This document shows, one piece after another, positions 46,423 to 54,830 of a stretch of 64,000 nt of DNA. The notes under the pieces were generated by a model. It did not search any database, was not told where the DNA came from, and was given only the letters and a program-made list of their open reading frames with translations. Each line of letters begins with the position of its first letter. Position 1 is the first letter of the stretch. The stretch comes from Prasinococcaceae sp. CCMP 1430. Lineage: Eukaryota > Plantae > Prasinodermophyta. The position numbers were made by a program, and so were the translations under genes. The stretch covers positions 15,641 through 79,640 of the forward strand of contig RQSC01000907.1 in NCBI GenBank assembly GCA_013416795.1. Direction: 5' to 3'.

Positions 46423-48800
46423 TTACGCTCGGTCTGCGGCGGGCGAGTCCACCGCGTCGTAGTCGAGCACGCGCGGCGTGTCCATATAGCTGGAGAACTG
46501 CCTCGCGACCATCTCCTGGCCCTTCACCATGCGAGAAGGCGTGTGCGAGTGGGGCCCTTCGTCCGCTCCTGAGGATTCCTCCCCCGGCGCGGGACCCGCG
46601 GAGGCAAGCTGCGTGCCGTGTCTTTCCTCCTCGGTCGGGCACTCCGTCGCCGCGGTAGTGGCGGTGGCGGAGGTCGTCTCGTCGTGAGAATGCCCGGATC
46701 CCACCGTGGCGACGGACGAATCGGACGTGGTGTTGCTGCTCGCCGTCGGGCTCCCTCTGGTGCGCATTCTCGAAGAAATCTCCGAGTCGAGCTCGCGCAC
46801 GAGCTCGCGCAGGGCCACGTCGTGGTCGTCCTCGTCGCCCCCGCCGTCGCCAGGCATTGCATACTGCAGAACGCGGGGGGTGTCCAGAAACGCGGAACAC
46901 ATGCGGCCCAGCTTGGATTCGGCAGCTGCAAGGACAGCCTCCGAGTCCAGCGCGGCTGCCGAGGATCCGGTCGCGCGCGAAGTGTCGCCCATGGCGGGCG
47001 GTGTCCCCGCCCCATGCACCTCGGAGGCACAGTCGCCACGTCCCCTCGCTCGTCCCGCCCGCTCACTGGCACTGGCCAGCTGTGTGCTGCCACTCGCAGC
47101 AGCGACCGGCGCCCGCGCCCGCCGCACGCTGCGCATCGAACGCAGCATTGCGGGCGATGGGCGTCGTACGCTCGTCGGAGTCGTCTCCTCCCACTGGCAG
47201 GAGAAAGCGCTGCGCTCTCCCGTCGCTTTCCTTTGATCTTCAGGGGGAACCACCATCAGCGGCTCCTCTCGCTGTCGGGCCTGCTCGTCAAAACTTTGCG
47301 TGCCAATGGCATCGTCATCTTCTAGCGCGTCGATGCACGCATCGATGGCGGCACGAGCGCCGGCGAGCTCGCACATCAGCCGCGTTTCAGCCTCGCGCAC
47401 GGCAGCGGTCGCTTGTGTGAACTCACTCCACCGCGTTTCGAGTCGCGCGCGCCACCGTAGCAGCCGCCGCACTGGCGCTCGGCGCGCGCGAGAGGTCTCT
47501 TCCTCGATCGCGTCGTGCGACGGGTCCGATTGCGCGGGCGGCGCGCTGCCGTTGACAGTCACAGGTGTTTGAAAAGTCACGGTGGCGCGCTGCACTTTCT
47601 TTTCTTCCCATGGCGTCGCATTCGCTGCCGTCGAGGTCGCCTGCCTGAGCGCGCCCATCGTCACGGGCTTGTGCAAAACACCGCGCGCGCCCCAGCGCAT
47701 GCTCTCCTCTCGGACACCATCAGCCTCCCGCGTATTCGAATCCACTCCACTCATGACTAGCACACACGTTCGGCTGAGTGCAGCTTTTCCGCGTGCACTC
47801 GACATCAGACGACGCAGCATGGCCGGCCCGCTGCAGCGCGGCATTCGGTGGTCCGCCAGGATTAAGTCGAACACGAACAGGGGCTCCGGTGTCGCCCAAT
47901 TGTGATGCTCGTCGTCGTCGTCAGCGTAGAGGGAGAAGGGGCCTGGAGCACTGCCGCGCTCCGTTTCGACAGTCCCGACGTCACCATCTGGCGTGCGAGC
48001 TGGAGCGCGTTTTTGCTCGCTGCTTTTGGAGGCGCCACCGTGACGGTCAGCGCCGCCACCATCGTCATTCTGGACGAACGCGGCCATCTCCATGACGACG
48101 CCCGCGCCCTCGTCGCCGTCGGCGGCGGACCAAACGGCATAGCCCATTCTCTCGAGCAGGCGTCGGCAGATGAGCCGCGTGGCGGGATCGTCGTCCACCA
48201 CCAGGGCACGCCCGAGCGCGCCGCGCGGCGGCTCCAGCTGGGACAGCGACGCCGCGGTACTGGCACCACGCCCGAGGCTGTCTGCTCCTCCGATGCCGCG
48301 CGGCCGCGCGTCTGAGGCCGCCGTCCCACCGAGCCTCCGACTCGCCGGCGCCGACTCCGGCTTGTGCGCGGGCATCCCCCCGTGCAGTCCGCCGATGAGC
48401 GCAAGGCTCTCGTCGGCGGAGCGCCACGCCATGCCTGCCGAGGATAGCAGAGGGACCGGGGTGCGCGCCGGGCTCGTCGGGGCGGCGCCGCCGTGGCTCG
48501 GGCCCTCGCCCGCGCCGTCGCGGTCCTCGCCCGCGGCCGCCGAGGCAGATGGAGTGGCGTGCTGCGCCTTGGACTGTCTCGCGCCGTGGACCTGTTGTGG
48601 CTGCTGCGGCCGCCCTCGCGCTTGGGAAGTCCTCGGGCGCGCGGGTGTCGGCGGTTGATGCCTCCGCGCACTGCGATCGACGTGCCGCGCGGTGGTGTAC
48701 GCGTTGTACGCAACGCGCTCCCCGCTGGGCGACGTGAGCGCCTCGGCGGCGGCCGCCGCCGCGTGCGACACGGCGTCCGCCGCGAGCCGCGCGGCGGCNN
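46423..48800 (-). CDS. response-regulator receiver (REC) domain protein with no recognisable DNA-binding output; 5' end uncertain (Ns at 48799-48804)
   Basis: RALVVDDDPATRLICRRLLERMGYAVWSAADG, FDLILADHRMPRCSG (acceptor Asp codon 47851-47853), VLVMSG and GARGVLHKPVT. Confidence 0.85.
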
Positions 48801-49377
48801 NNNNCCGCGCGCCGCGCCGCGCGCGTCCGCTGGCCCTCGAGTGGTGCGTCGCAGGGAGGGTGACGCCGTGGGCGGCGGGGGGGGTGCGGGCAACGCGCCC
48901 CCGCACCGCCGCCGCCCCGCACTCTTTCGCGCTGCCTCCTTTGGCGCCGCCGGCGAACTCCTCTCTTTCCGAATGAGAGAGAAATGACCACATCCGAGCA
49001 CCCAATTGATTTTGATTGGCTGAAACCTGAAACCTGAAGAAGCATCAAAATGCATTGCGCCGCGGATGCGGATGGAATGAGAATGAATGAGGGAGGCGCC
49101 CTCTCAATTTGATACGAAAAACAGATTTGTGGTCGTGCACATTTTTCCAGGATTGCTCTCCCGTGGGTAATGTCGCGTCGCATTCGCTTTAGATTTCGTT
49201 TTCGGACGGGGCTGACCCCCCCCCCCTTCCACCCAATGGGACCCATCAGAATGAGAATGTTTTGCGAGACGAGGTCGGGCCGCCCTCATCGCGTGATACC
49301 AGGCGGCGCCGCGCCGTCGGCCTCGCTATCGCGCGAAATCGCTCGCGATCGCGCTCGCCGCCGTCGGGGCGCGAGAC

Positions 49378-49441
49378 GCGCAGCGCAGTGCAGCGCAGCG
49401 CAGCGCAGCGCAGGCGTTAGCTAGCAGTGCAGCGCAGCGCG
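49378..49441. repeat. (CAGCG)n pentanucleotide repeat
   Basis: cagcgcagtgcagcgcagcgcagcgcagcgcag...gcagtgcagcgcagcgc seen directly. Confidence 0.8.
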
Positions 49442-49913
49442 GGCGCGGTCGCGGGCGCGGGCGCGCCACACCTTGGGCGGGGCCGGGGTGTTGTGTGCGC
49501 GGAGGGGACCCACGAGGGCGCCAGGTTGCCGGCGAGGGGGCGGCGCGCGGGGGAAGCGCGGGGCGGGGCAGGGGGGGGTGTCAGAGCGCGCTCGCGGCGC
49601 GACATCGGCGGACGCGCGGCGCCGGGGGACGCTCCCGTTCTCGCCGTGCCGGCGCGCGGGCCCTCGAGAGGGAGGGGGAAGAGGCAACGGGCGGGGCCAG
49701 AAAGGGGAAGTGGGAGGGTGCGCGTGACGGAGTGGCTCGCCGTCGCCGAGGTGGCGAGAGAGGCCCGCCGAATCAGGCCCTGATCCCCGCCGGGAGCGCC
49801 CGTCTCCGCGCGCGCCGCGCCGCCGAGCGCGAGAGCGAGCGAGCACGAGCGCGCGGCCAGGCCCAGGCGCGTGCAGCGCACCTCTCGCGCTCAACCCGCG
49901 CCACTCTATCGCC

Positions 49914-52900
49914 ATGACCCGCACCAAGGAGGTAGCGCGCAAGTCCCATGGTAGGCCTTGGGCGCCCTGGGCGTCCCTCCCTACGATCCAGCAAACGTTG
50001 GACGCGCTGGCCGATGCCATCGCGAGCGCGCCGGGGGAGCACCAGAGCGGCGCCGACGGGGGCGCCGCCGCAGCCCAAGGCGATGGCGACGGAGGCAGCG
50101 GAGATGGCGACAGCGGCGCGGATGGGGATGCTCACGGACGCGATGGCAGCAGCGATGACCGTGACAACTGCGACAATAGCGGCGATGGCAATGACAGCGA
50201 CCGCAGCGGCCGCACCGGCGGCATCCACGCCAGCGGCAGGAGCGGCAGCCGCGACGGCAGCGACAGGAGCGGCGAGAGCGACAGCACGAGCAGCAGCAGC
50301 GACGACAGTGGCGGCGAAGACGGCGGTCGCGCCAGCCAAAGCAAGAGCAGCGACGACGACGGCGGCGCCGAAGGCGGTCGCAGCGGGGGCGAAACCAGCG
50401 GGGACGACGGCCAGTTCTATGCGCAGCCAGCGGCAGGCGACGCCGCGGCCGGCGCCGGTGCCGCACCTGCCGGTGCCGCAACCGGCGCGGGCGCCAGCCC
50501 GAGCTCAGGCGCGAGCCCGGGCCCGCGCGAGGTGTGGGAGTCGCTGCAGGTGGACTGGAGTGCCGGGAACGAGCGCGACGGGGACATCTACCTGGTCGGC
50601 GGCAGCGGCACGCGGCGCCTGGCCATGCGCCGGACGGCGTGGACCGACGGCCATGGCGACAACAGGTACGTGTACACCACAGAGGGCATACTGGAGCGCG
50701 ACTTCTTCATGACACAGCGGGCTGCGGACGCGGTCGACCTACTCGTGCGCTGTCTCGGCATGGGAGTGCAGGAGCACCTCGAGGCGCACCAGCGCAATCA
50801 GCAGCTGCTCTGGACGCTTGAGCGCGTCGCGGCGTCTGCAGCGGGAGGCGAGGGCTGGCAGGGGCCCGCGTCGAAGGACATGAAGGTGCGAGCAGCAGGG
50901 AGAGAGCTGGCGCGAGCGCGGCGCCGCGCCGAACGAGGCGGCACTCACGGCGACGCGCCTGCGCAGAGGTGGAGGAGGCGCATGCGCGCCAGGAACTCCA
51001 TGCGGGACGCCTGCGCGCATGTACGCCGCCGCGCAGATTCTGACAAGCGCGGGCGGCACACTCCTTTCTGCGTCTGCATGCATGCAACTGACTCACGCTC
51101 CGCTGTACCGCCCGCCCCCATCTTCGCGTCTGGTATCAGGAATGGGGCCCATTCTTGATGTGGCAACTCGTCGGCCACCGCCTGGAGATGCCGCGTGGCC
51201 TGCACGGCAAGCTCACGCGCGGCACCATCGTCCGCCCGTCGCAGAAGACCTTCCGCAAGACTTCTGGCCTTCAATCGGGCGCTGTATACATCGCGTGGGA
51301 CGGCGATGGCACGAGCGCGGGCGAGAGTGCAGACGCCGGCGGGGCCGTTGGTGGGGGCGTGACCGACAGCGTGGACGACTGCAATTCAGTCCATCTTTGC
51401 AGCGGTAGGCCCCTTTCCCAGCCAGACTGCTGGCGCTGGCTGGAACCCTTTCCTGGACGCGCTCCGGAAATTTGTGCGCTCAACCAGATGCAGGCCGATG
51501 CCTATCGTGAGCTCTTCTCTGAGCTGAAGTACCGCGTTTTGCGGGCCGGGAAAATGAAAGGGCCGCGCAAAGTCAAGTCAGCTGGGGCGGGCGGCGCGGA
51601 CGGCGTTAGCGGGCGCGACGGGGAGGACGCTGCAGCGGCGATGATCAGGGCGGAGGAGAAGGACCGAGCGGGCAATGGCGCGCCGGGCAAGTCCAGGAAG
51701 GTGAGGGACATTGTCGCCATCATGGCGACATTGCACGCGAAGAACTCCATGCCTACGCCTGTCGCGCGTAAACGCGGGCACGATGATGGGGCTGAGGCGG
51801 GGGTTACGAATGAGGGCGCTGCAAAAATCCCAGAGGGCACGAGGCGCGTGGCCCCTCTTCCCGCCCGACCGCCACGCGGTACGGTGCGGTGTGCCGCAAG
51901 AGGGCACAAGTTCAGCGAGGGCGAGGTGGAAAACATGCTGATCTACATTTTCAAGGCAGTGCCGCTCTCTTGCTACGAGGCAAACCCGGCGTGTATGTAC
52001 AGCGAAGCGTTCTGGCGCGGCGCGATCGAGGCAAACTTCATCGCTGAAGGGCGCACAGCCACGTCTGTCGCACAATTCGCAAGGCGCGTCCTAAAGGGGT
52101 ACGTAGAGAAACACTACGACGACAGCGAAGGAAAGAAGCCTGAGGTGAGATGCTGCGACACCTTCCCGCGCGACGCAGGCGTGCGCCCACGAACCATTCC
52201 AGCGCGTCGCGCGCGCTACGCGTCCAAACGTTTCCGATGCGATCTGACTTCCTTCTGCCCCCACGCAGACGGCGCTGAGGACGCGCAAACGCAAGACAAG
52301 CGCGGGGCCAGCACCGACCCAGGCACCTCATTCGAAGCCCGGGAAGCGCACGCGACGAGCGAAGAGCACGCAGCCCTCGCGCTTTGAGCGGAATGTGTCA
52401 GGGCAAGAGGTTCTCGCTCCTGCGGAGGCAGTTGACAGCCACGCGCAGGCGCAGCTCGAGGCCCTCCAACAGGAGCTGCGCGAAGCCACACTCGCCAAGA
52501 GCGAGGCTGAGCGCCGGCTACGAGCAGAGCGCGCGCAGAGCGACCGGCGGGCGATACGTGACGCCCGCACACTCGCATCCCTTGACGCGGAGCAGAGGAG
52601 AACCAAGGCGGAGCTAGCCAAGGTGCGCGCCGCGCTGCTCCTCCATGCGCCCCACTGCCCGGAGGCTCTCAGCGACGGCACGTGTGCACGCACAATGCGT
52701 TGGCCCTACGTGCCCGGTGCGCGAGCTGCACGCGCGCGGGGCGAGGAGCCCGCGAGTGGCCAGGGGGATGAGCAGCTCAGACAGGGGCCGCTCGCGAGCC
52801 TCGAGGAGGTGCTGCGCCTGCTGCGGGCCGAGGCTGAGCCGTCGAACGAGGCCATCGCCAACACGCTAGACTACATCGGCGAGGTGCAGGAGAGACAGGG

Positions 52901-53543
52901 GGCGCTCGATCCTGCGCTTGCGAGCTACGAGGAGGTGCTGCGCCTGAGGCGGGCAGCGGTTAAGAAGCCCTCGGACGGGGCCATCGCCGCCGCGCTAGAA
53001 AACATCGGGTTCGTTCAGGGAAAGCTTGGGGCACTTGAGACAGCGCGTAAGAAGCACCAGGAGGCGCTGGATATTCGCCGCAAGGCGCTGGGCGACGACC
53101 ACCCAAGGGTTGCCTTGTCCCTCCTCAACATTAGCGATGCCTGCAATAAGATGGGCAGGCACGATGAGGCCCTCGCCGCGGCGGAGGAGTCCATGCGCAT
53201 CTCCCGGGCCGCTCTTCCTTTCCTCGCGTCTGCGGCCGACGTTCGGGACGTGCGTCACAACCTGGGCATCGCCATCAACAACGCCGGCGAAGCGCTCCAC
53301 GGCCTGGGTCGCTTCGACGAGGCCATTGCCAAGTGCGAGGAAGCGCTGGACGTGTACGCAGTTGTTGGTCTGCGCGACGACCACGAGCACCCAACTCAGG
53401 CGCGCGATCTGCTCGGACGGGCGAAGAGGGGGGAAGGGCCCGAGTGTTTCGAGGGAGGTGACTCTGGGCAAGACGAGGAGCAAGCCACGGACGGCGCGAC
53501 CCCCTGTGCTGTCGAGCCTGTTGAGCAAGTGCTCGCGCAATAA
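49914..53543 (+). CDS. multidomain protein: H3-tail-like N-terminus, G/D/S-rich linker, Tudor-like, Rap1-type Myb-like, coiled-coil and TPR regions; exons 49914..50885, 51140..52144, 52269..53543 (possible extra in-frame intron 52623-52763)
   Basis: Phase-0 introns 50886-51139 (GTGCGA..ACTGAC..TCAG) and 52145-52268 (GTGAGA..CTGAC..GCAG) join ORFs 49914.., 51155.. and 52395..53543 in frame. Kinesin-light-chain-type TPRs are clear (IANTLDYIGEVQERQG..ALASYEEVLRLRR; LDIRRKALGDDHPRVALSLLNI). Confidence 0.7.
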
Positions 53544-53584
53544 GTAACTTGTCGTTGCGGTTCTCAGGTCGATGACTTGCACGA

Positions 53585-53705
53585 GAGAGCGCTACGCGCG
53601 GAGCACGCATGCCGACGATGAACTGTGCAGGCCGTCGGAAAGGATCCCAAGGACCTTGCGCGTCGGCCAGCAGGTGAGGTCGATTGGCTTGTCCCGCTTG
53701 GTGAA
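53585..53705 (-). mobile_element. 3' fragment of an RLE-type non-LTR retrotransposon ORF
   Basis: The minus strand reads LFTKRDKPIDLTCWPTRKVLGILSDGLHSSSSACVLRA*, a diverged copy of the end of ORF 53935..54444 (LFTNRVTQADPSRWPTGKVFRVLADGLHSSSSACVLRA). Confidence 0.75.
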
Positions 53706-53708
53706 GAG

Positions 53709-53777
53709 GTGCTGCAAAGGGTGCGATTACAGTGCAAGGAGACGCAAGCGCAAGGTTGCGTAGCGCGCGTGTGTAAG
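53709..53777 (+). repeat. ~70-bp module M (copy 1)
   Basis: GTGCTGCAAAGGGTGCGATTACAGTGCAAGGAGACGCAAGCGCAAGGTTGCGTAGCGCGCGTGTGTAAG is a close reverse-complement match to 54470-54539. Its first 23 nt are the exact reverse complement of 53814-53836. Confidence 0.92.
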
Positions 53778-53849
53778 CCACCCCCTCGCTTGGCAGTTCT
53801 TCACCCCTCGTATTGTAATCGCACCCTTTGCAGCACTTCACCCGCCCCG

Positions 53850-54444
53850 ACACAGCTGGCGCAGCCCTGTACGAGGCCCTGCAATCCATGCATCAAGAAC
53901 GAGCTCCTCACCCTCTCGTCGCACCGGCTACCACGTGCACACCAACGGCCCCAGCTCCACCAACTCGTTCGAGTACTCGTTCGGTACTGACGAAAATGGC
54001 CAGCCCACTGACCTGCGCTCGGACCTAGTCATCACCGACACCGACACAGGCTACAGACACTGCCTCGACGTCACCTTCACGGATCCGTCAGCCAAGGTCA
54101 ACATGGCAGGCGCGAACCCGTCCACGGCGGCAGGCCTGGAGCACCTCTACAAGGTCCACGTCCAGCGCTACGCGAAGATCTGCGAGCACCACCGCATCCA
54201 GTTCCACACGCTAGCGTTCGACACCCTGGGCCGTGCACACAGGTCCACCAGGGGGGACATCCGCCACCTCTTCACCAACCGGGTCACGCAGGCGGACCCA
54301 AGCCGCTGGCCGACGGGCAAGGTCTTTCGGGTCCTTGCCGACGGCCTGCACAGTTCATCGTCGGCATGCGTTCTCCGCGCGTGCGGCGTGCACACACACG
54401 ACCGCCCCAGGCGCCGCTCTCGCGGCAGCGCTGCGGGCGGATAG
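53850..54444 (+). mobile_element. restriction-like endonuclease (RLE) domain of a 5'-truncated non-LTR retrotransposon
   Basis: DLRSDLVITDTDTGYRHCLDVTFTDP...YKVHVQRYAKIC..IQFHTLAFDTLG fits the RxD..(L/I)DVT..P..K..KY..F.PLA.ETLG pattern of R2/CRE-type RLE domains. Confidence 0.75.
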
Positions 54445-54469
54445 CTAGCTTTCACTCATGCCCTTACTT

Positions 54470-54539
54470 CTTAGACACACGCGCGCTACGCAACCTCGCG
54501 CTTGCGTCTTCTCGTACTGTAATCGCACCCTTTGCAGCA
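54470..54539 (-). repeat. ~70-bp module M (copy 2, inverted relative to copy 1)
   Basis: CTTAGACACACGCGCGCTACGCAACCTCGCGCTTGCGTCTTCTCGTACTGTAATCGCACCCTTTGCAGCA on the + strand. Confidence 0.92.
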
Positions 54540-54830
54540 GATCCGCGGGACCTTGTCGCCATCGCAGACCGTCTCGACATTGTCGATGATGGAGAGGATC
54601 ATGGCTTCGGGGTCCAGCTTGCGGATCTCGGTGACGTACTGCATCAGTGGCTCGCGAGAGACCAGGCAGTGCAGGAGGGACCCGAAGGCGCATCCTTGGG
54701 TGGCGCCGCGAGACGAGATGACCCGTTCGTTGCTGGCGCTGCCAGCGACGAAGAACGACGTCGGGCCGCCGTACAGGAGGCGCACGTAAGGCAAGAGCTC
54801 CGGCATGTCACGCTTGACCGCAGGCAAAGG
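54540..54830 (-). mobile_element. reverse transcriptase fragment (non-LTR, CRE/SLACS-like)
   Basis: LLPYVRLLYGGPTSFFV..VISSRGATQGCAFGSLLHCL (the G.xQG.xLGP.LF motif) and MILSIIDNV (a degenerate YxDD position). Confidence 0.75.

Follow-up and report, generated by a model that had tools for sequence, protein, structure and literature searches.

A candidate H3-tail mimic on a TPR protein of the green alga Prasinoderma

Most known cases of histone-tail mimicry come from animal transcription factors and from viruses, and they usually span four to five residues; canonical H3 itself begins ARTKQTARKSTG (residues 1-12). Mimicry of the H3 N-terminus follows the rule iM-Z-R-x-K, in which iM is the initiator methionine and Z is small; A, G, S, C, T, P or V after the methionine permit its excision, and such ends are bound by H3K4 readers or NuRD and carry a K4 that can be methylated (Chen et al. 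2021, PMC8166343). Here we analyze a 64,000-nucleotide stretch of contig RQSC01000907.1 from Prasinococcaceae sp. CCMP 1430 (hereafter the window) and, within it, a forward-strand gene at 49914-53543 whose predicted product starts with 13 H3-like residues. We tentatively favor, short of even confidence, a reading in which this product is a nuclear scaffold of about 1083 residues, with a processed N-terminus that mimics the H3 tail and tetratricopeptide repeats (TPRs) that hold a partner.

The H3-like N-terminus

The coding sequence opens with the feature on which this reading turns.

49914-49952, + strand: H3-tail-like N-terminus, M-TRTKEVARKSHG, matching H3 residues 1-12 at 8 of 12 positions

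This N-terminus reads MTRTKEVARKSHG in the window, and its 13-residue likeness to H3 bears out the H3-like tail proposed in the original prediction, which had been made from the sequence alone. Two wild relatives assembled from TARA metagenomes, L003 and L004, also cover the start. L004 reads MARTKEVARKSHG (M-ARTKEVARKSHG), which raises the identities with H3 to nine of 12 and includes a perfect ARTK, and L003 reads MTRTKWVARKSHG (M-TRTKWVARKSHG). The residue after the initiator methionine is Thr in the window and L003 and Ala in L004, both compatible with methionine excision in H3-tail mimics (H3TMs), and the mature chain would begin T/A-R-T-K in all three lineages, thus carrying Arg2 and Lys4. 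ARKS follows at the H3 spacing and would occupy mature residues 7-10. R2, T3, K4, A7, R8, K9 and S10 are retained in the three lineages, with E or W at position 6. In L003 the first 13 codons carry four base changes, two of them synonymous, whereas indels have reshaped residues 16-20, and the 5' flank, corresponding to the 5' untranslated region (UTR), has diverged by 8.5-9.6 percent. With a fixed register and the local amino-acid composition, at least eight of 12 identities have a chance probability of 3e-7 for a single protein; across the published P. coloniale genome with its 7,139 genes (25.3 Mb, 69.8 percent G+C; PMC7455551) this rises to about 2e-3. The window has a G+C content of about 68 percent, and within it we found neither an H3 gene nor a second H3-like start.

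Under the favored reading, removal of the initiator methionine would expose the T/A-R-T-K...A-R-K-S end in the nucleus, which the protein would enter by means of a bipartite basic stretch. The exposed end could be bound, and perhaps modified, by factors whose usual ligand is the H3 tail: PHD, WD40 or chromodomain proteins, for example, or a histone importin. A partner held by the TPR array would be connected in this way with the H3-tail machinery; alternatively, the protein would serve as a decoy. Two features of the third exon enter into this proposal.

52278-52364, + strand: basic, bipartite stretch resembling a nuclear localization signal (NLS), read from the translation, with a putative function in nuclear entry
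52821-53408, + strand: TPR_12/TPR_10 array of about 4.5 units of 42 residues, recognized by Pfam and visible as a 126-nt direct repeat

The NLS-like stretch, predicted earlier and evident in the translation, consists of RKRK, 16 residues and KRTRRAK, and is retained in all relatives. The array, foreseen as about four TPRs of the kinesin-light-chain type, matches TPR_12 with an E-value of 2.8e-26 (91.9 bits against a cut-off of 30.1) and TPR_10 with 1.8e-19 (69.5 bits against 27.5). Judged from profile matches and substitution ratios, the C-terminus is a generic TPR_12-type protein-binding platform under purifying selection.

A related reading, which we consider unlikely, makes the protein a soluble decoy or sensor of the H3-tail machinery: its tail would be both written and read by H3-modifying enzymes and readers, and cage-less Tudor-like, Rap1-Myb-like and TPR modules would tie a partner pathway to the machinery's state. 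An H3-tail-decoy architecture of this kind has no described counterpart, and the earlier claim that no described protein shares the architecture stands insofar as exons 1 and 2 have no homologue outside Prasinoderma in the collections searched.

Nearly equal in likelihood to the favored H3-mimic scaffold is an orphan TPR scaffold that evolves fast, has no part in chromatin and bears an H3 likeness without function, either coincidence or a relic such as a captured H3 5' fragment. The absence of homologues beyond the genus in these collections fits this alternative, as does the lack of any chromatin domain above any threshold. Codon bias alone would make a convergent peptide H3-like at the DNA level, and the variable position 6 points the same way. 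Exon 2 evolves fast, with a ratio of nonsynonymous to synonymous substitution rates (dN/dS) of 0.5-1.1 (pairwise Nei-Gojobori estimates, window against five relatives, from small counts). On the other side stand the improbability of such a match in this genome, the persistence of seven H3 residues where the 5' UTR and residues 16-20 vary freely, and the chromatin-type families to which both internal leads from a protein-language-model search belong.

Several further points weigh against the favored scaffold. Across the many genomes that have been scanned, one chance match this good may turn up. The relatives compared are just 4-8 percent apart, which makes conservation over 13 residues a weak sign of constraint, so the comparison establishes the H3-like start in several lineages but not strong constraint on it. 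Residues 1-660 gave no homologue, fold or interaction, and nuclear localization is read from a sequence pattern. The transcript contigs leave the low-complexity interval 50326-50553 uncovered, so we infer that the H3-like start and the remainder of the protein share one mRNA; the public gene model begins at Met167, and the start at 49914 is a prediction from nucleotide sequence. If the favored reading holds, tail mimicry would also be used by cells outside animals, in the earliest-branching green-plant phylum, and a natural soluble H3 tail would offer a handle on the readers and writers present in this lineage.

A three-exon gene and its predicted translation start

The open reading frame (ORF) listing contains three open frames, at 49914-51158, 51155-52387 and 52395-53543. 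The exons below join them into 324 + 335 + 424 = 1083 codons. We aligned public contigs from two transcript-type runs (X1 and X2) and one DNA run (X3) to 49300-53900; GC3 denotes G+C at third codon positions.

49844-49913, + strand: minimal 5' UTR, without an upstream ATG; the first X1 transcript contig begins at 49844
49914-50885, + strand: exon 1, residues 1-324; open frame with GC3 of 0.80-0.88, and a donor at 50886 used in X1 and X2
50886-51139, + strand: intron 1, 254 nt, GT..AG, phase 0; skipped in X1 and X2, kept in an X3 DNA contig
51140-52144, + strand: exon 2, residues 325-659, from translation and contig alignment
52145-52268, + strand: intron 2, 124 nt, GT..AG, phase 0; skipped in X1, kept in an X3 DNA contig, present in some lineages
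52269-53543, + strand: exon 3, residues 660-1083 and the stop codon, from translation and contig alignment
53544-53671, + strand: 3' UTR, ending inside retroelement-related sequence; the third X1 contig ends at 53671; inverted-repeat arms at 53594-53711

The X1 contigs join 50883 to 51138 and 52142 to 52267, skipping 254 and 124 nt respectively, both bounded by GT..AG; the joints fit equally well 2 nt to the right, which places the exon ends at 50885/51140 and 52144/52269. An X2 contig shows the first joint, with intron 1 skipped, and the X3 DNA contigs retain both introns. The locus is thus one expressed three-exon gene, spliced at both predicted introns, in agreement with the anticipated phase-0 introns joining three ORFs into about 1050-1080 residues.

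Exact protein look-up assigns the DNA to the marine green alga Prasinoderma coloniale. Two public records map to this stretch. UniRef A0A7R9TJX7, a 565-residue MMETSP ORF automatically named "Kinesin light chain", begins at Met519 because its contig breaks at 51675. The P. coloniale genome model PRCOL_00007269-RA (917 residues) has the same introns and starts at Met167, and this public model is probably truncated at its start. A practical gain of the analysis is the correction of that start and of the automatic name. Within exon 2, the 85-nt piece at 51675-51759 holds the palindrome GTCGCCATCATGGCGAC; a second copy with five differences occurs elsewhere in the genome, on a 6.2-kb X3 contig, and in the X1 transcriptome, and transcript contigs break at this piece because it is repeated.

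A start at Met167 or later, with the H3-like peptide and the acidic region that follows it forming a 5' leader or a separate upstream ORF and never belonging to the TPR protein, is a possibility that we consider unlikely. The genome annotation (P0002) and the MMETSP ORF both begin downstream, and transcript contigs do not bridge 50326-50553. Yet the MMETSP ORF owes its start to a broken contig, and an X1 contig that is colinear with the window over 49844-50325 has the ATG at 49914 as its first, with none in 49844-49913. From this ATG the frame stays open up to the donor at 50886, and G+C over the three codon positions is 0.67/0.64/0.87 at 49914-50069 and 0.68/0.67/0.80 in the acidic region, a coding-type pattern, whereas the profile is flat across the 5' flank and the two introns. 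L004 retains a single 429-codon ORF from the same ATG, and its two indels relative to the window, of 6 and 39 nt, are both in frame. Third-position periodicity, together with indels that keep the frame and the position of the transcript contig's first AUG, indicates that the N-terminal extension is coding. We rejected a candidate splice donor at 49951 (G|GTAGG), through which the X1 transcript contig reads.

50031-50411, + strand: acidic Asp/Ser/Gly-rich low-complexity region of variable length, from the translation

This Ser/Asp/Arg/Gly stretch varies in length among relatives through in-frame repeat units of the AGC-GAC-CGC type. After 50204 (50204-50205), L004 carries a 39-nt repeat insertion in frame, and L003 a longer insertion broken by Ns.

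The introns vary as well. Intron 2 is exactly missing from the wild Prasinoderma contigs L001 (junction 1661-1662) and L006 (1973-1974) and is carried by the window, L002, L003 and L004. Contigs L001 and L006 look genomic because they keep intron 1 and extend beyond the mRNA end. By comparison of these sequences, intron 2 is a presence/absence polymorphism in the species complex. A multi-copy introner was considered for intron 2 and rejected, since the DNA run covers intron and flanks to the same depth, and a 27-nt likeness to a retroelement module reaches only 74 percent. Intron 1 (50886-51139) has diverged by 0.8-3.9 percent, less than synonymous sites of the flanking exons (dS 0.05-0.15), which suggests a constrained intron element or a mosaic history.

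Exon 2, the TPR platform and the neighborhood

Between the acidic region and exon 3 lie three stretches that the profile searches did not assign to a family.

50529-50885, + strand: orphan region, residues 206-324; best constrained part outside the TPRs, dN/dS 0.08-0.47 in six pairwise comparisons
51167-51310, + strand: unproven Tudor-like stretch, residues 334-381; language-model top hit PF21743, 0.82
51902-52099, + strand: unproven Rap1-Myb-like stretch, residues 579-644; language-model top hit PF08914, 0.82

The substitution ratios by region were as follows.

Residues 206-324: dN/dS 0.08-0.47
Tudor-like stretch: dN/dS 0.4-0.7
Middle of exon 2: dN/dS 0.65-1.1
Myb-like stretch: dN/dS 0.5-1.1 (one value of 4.7, based on 7 changes)
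TPR array: dN/dS 0.1-0.5

The best-constrained part outside the TPRs is therefore residues 206-324, which the original prediction had left uninterpreted. Pfam searches with whole exons and five sub-pieces, allowing E-values up to 10, recovered no family outside the TPRs, and a sequence search of the PDB gave no match for exons 1 and 2. HMMER with exon 2 against 1.84 billion representative proteins returned only the protein itself. Word-indexed searches of a collection of 5.8 billion clusters returned only near-identical Prasinoderma contigs and generic bacterial TPR proteins, and a JGI metagenome scan found no relative. Within the collections searched, exons 1 and 2 have no homologue outside Prasinoderma, and by this measure the gene is restricted to the genus.

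A protein-language-model search, in which scores below 0.9 count as leads and one third of shuffled proteins reach 0.8, ranked the PTM/DIR17 Tudor (PF21743, 0.82) first for residues 326-428, with Tudors of the Spin/Ssty, Agenet and 53BP1 types next. With residues 576-653, the Rap1 Myb (PF08914, 0.82) came out as top named cluster, ahead of other Myb families. Both leads are below threshold, and both top families are those named beforehand in the original prediction. Residues 202-391, searched as a single piece, gave no usable match. Single-sequence AlphaFold2 models were of low confidence, with a predicted local distance difference test (pLDDT) score of 38 for exon 2 and 37 for residues 202-476. 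No barrel was predicted in the Tudor-like stretch (pLDDT 27-42), where a Tudor domain would have a five-stranded beta-barrel. A Myb or SANT domain is a three-helix bundle with spaced aromatic core residues; helices at exon-2 residues 260-273, 289-301 and 307-325 in the Myb-like stretch reached a pLDDT of just 45-58. For both the Tudor and the Rap1-type Myb, then, the letter pattern that had been noticed is present but goes unrecognized by profile or fold methods. These stretches may be divergent small domains, and we give the Tudor fold and the Rap1 Myb fold each roughly even odds.

The cage of the RDM15/PDS5C Tudor, a royal-family domain, is built from W616, Y623 and Y641, together with D643 and D645 (PMC8184781). 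Residues 333-361, the would-be strands 1-2, are free of F, W and Y in every lineage with coverage there; W377 is the sole candidate for the role of Y641, and the acidic residues of WDGDG are out of register with D643 and D645. Because no aromatic residue sits where two cage residues (W616 and Y623) should be, the Tudor-like stretch appears to lack an aromatic cage, and canonical methyl-lysine reading, claimed earlier for this protein, is unlikely.

These results bear on the model first proposed for the locus, in which the Tudor domain binds the protein's own modified tail to cause auto-inhibition or a switch, contact with DNA or telomeres falls to the Myb-like domain, and transposons are the protein's target. 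We now regard this model as very unlikely, even though PF21743 and PF08914 lead the language-model ranking, tail and putative reader share one polypeptide, and retroelement fragments adjoin the gene. Besides the missing aromatics and misplaced acids, it is opposed by the failure of permissive Pfam searches, by folds that AlphaFold2 could not predict, and by the L001 contig, which has no retroelement downstream. To call the protein a "self-contained chromatin system", with own-tail auto-inhibition and DNA/telomere contact, is speculation.

Retroelement-related repeats begin at about 53594, and the mRNA end at 53671 falls inside them. L001 runs into unrelated sequence after 53571, so the adjacency of gene and retroelement, seen in the window as had been described, is not constant. 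Nothing ties the gene to transposon control, and the suggested silencing role is not supported. L004 and L006 stay colinear with the window until 53710/53711 and then carry an inverted piece of the same element that matches 54261-54152 (window 53594-54540, L004:4606-4800 and L006:3414-3521). In L004 the inverted piece is followed by a module of about 22 nt, CTGCTGCAAAGGGTGCGATTAC, and a short telomere-like run, AACCCTAACCCTAAC. The upstream neighbor, on the - strand at 46423-49005, is a long ORF in which Pfam recognizes a response-regulator receiver domain (E 1.2e-11); a gap of six Ns at 48799-48804 interrupts this ORF.

Exon 3 contains one further element between its basic stretch and the TPRs.

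52437-52652, + strand: long charged helix, possibly a coiled coil; weak Pfam match to the ATG14 coiled coil, E 0.0035

This 70-residue charged stretch is glycine-free and rich in A, E, L and R. Its heptad score was equalled by 43 of 500 shuffles and is not significant, and the coiled coil that had been predicted is not confirmed by this test. Apart from the protein itself, the TPR array comes closest to TPR and TPR-kinase proteins of bacteria, with which it shares about 30 percent identity. The UniProt automatic name, for which the best solved-structure matches (the TPR domains of KLC1 and KLC2, E 1e-13) speak, can be dismissed, and we rejected a kinesin light chain orthologue: the match is confined to about 80-105 residues within generic TPR_12 repeats, nothing beyond the TPRs resembles a kinesin light chain, and the array has about 4.5 repeats where a kinesin light chain has six.

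Comparison with described systems

The C-terminal half invites comparison with the TPR_12 arrays of kinesin light chain and nephrocystin-3, which likewise place 42-residue TPR_12/TPR_10 units after a long helix. The protein studied here has fewer repeats than kinesin light chain, no homology to its conserved heptad region, the part that binds the heavy chain, and bacterial TPR proteins as nearest relatives.

With the Rap1/TERF2IP Myb (PF08914) the Myb-like stretch shares, by eye, an F...W(21 residues)F spacing and a long loop between helices 1 and 2, as well as three to four helices predicted in a low-confidence AlphaFold2 model. It differs in having no profile match and a dN/dS near 1 between lineages. 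The Tudor-like stretch shares with the PTM/DIR17/PDS5C(RDM15) Tudor (PF21743) the letter pattern LVG.R...G.(I/V)V...(Y/F)I.WDGDG; here, however, there is no profile match, the W616 and Y623 positions are non-aromatic, the D643/D645 pair is off register and the fold is unproven.

Internal ARKS/ARKT mimics, found at the automethylation sites of G9a and SETDB1 and in the viral proteins NS1 and ORF8, also place A-R-K-S on a non-histone protein. In those proteins the motif stands alone, in an internal or C-terminal position, whereas the algal motif would fall at positions 7-10 after methionine removal, the same place as in H3.

Comparable with the N-terminus described here are the H3TMs, among them VRK1, BCL11A/B, SALL, FOG and PCLAF (Chen et al. 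2021, PMC8166343), with which it shares methionine, a small residue, R, x and K, here at the predicted N-terminus of a non-histone protein. Known H3TMs resemble H3 in the first four to five residues only. The algal protein, from an early-branching green alga, is predicted to begin M-T-R-T-K (M-A-R-T-K in a wild relative), and its likeness runs over 13 residues, including ARKS in the context of H3K9/S10.

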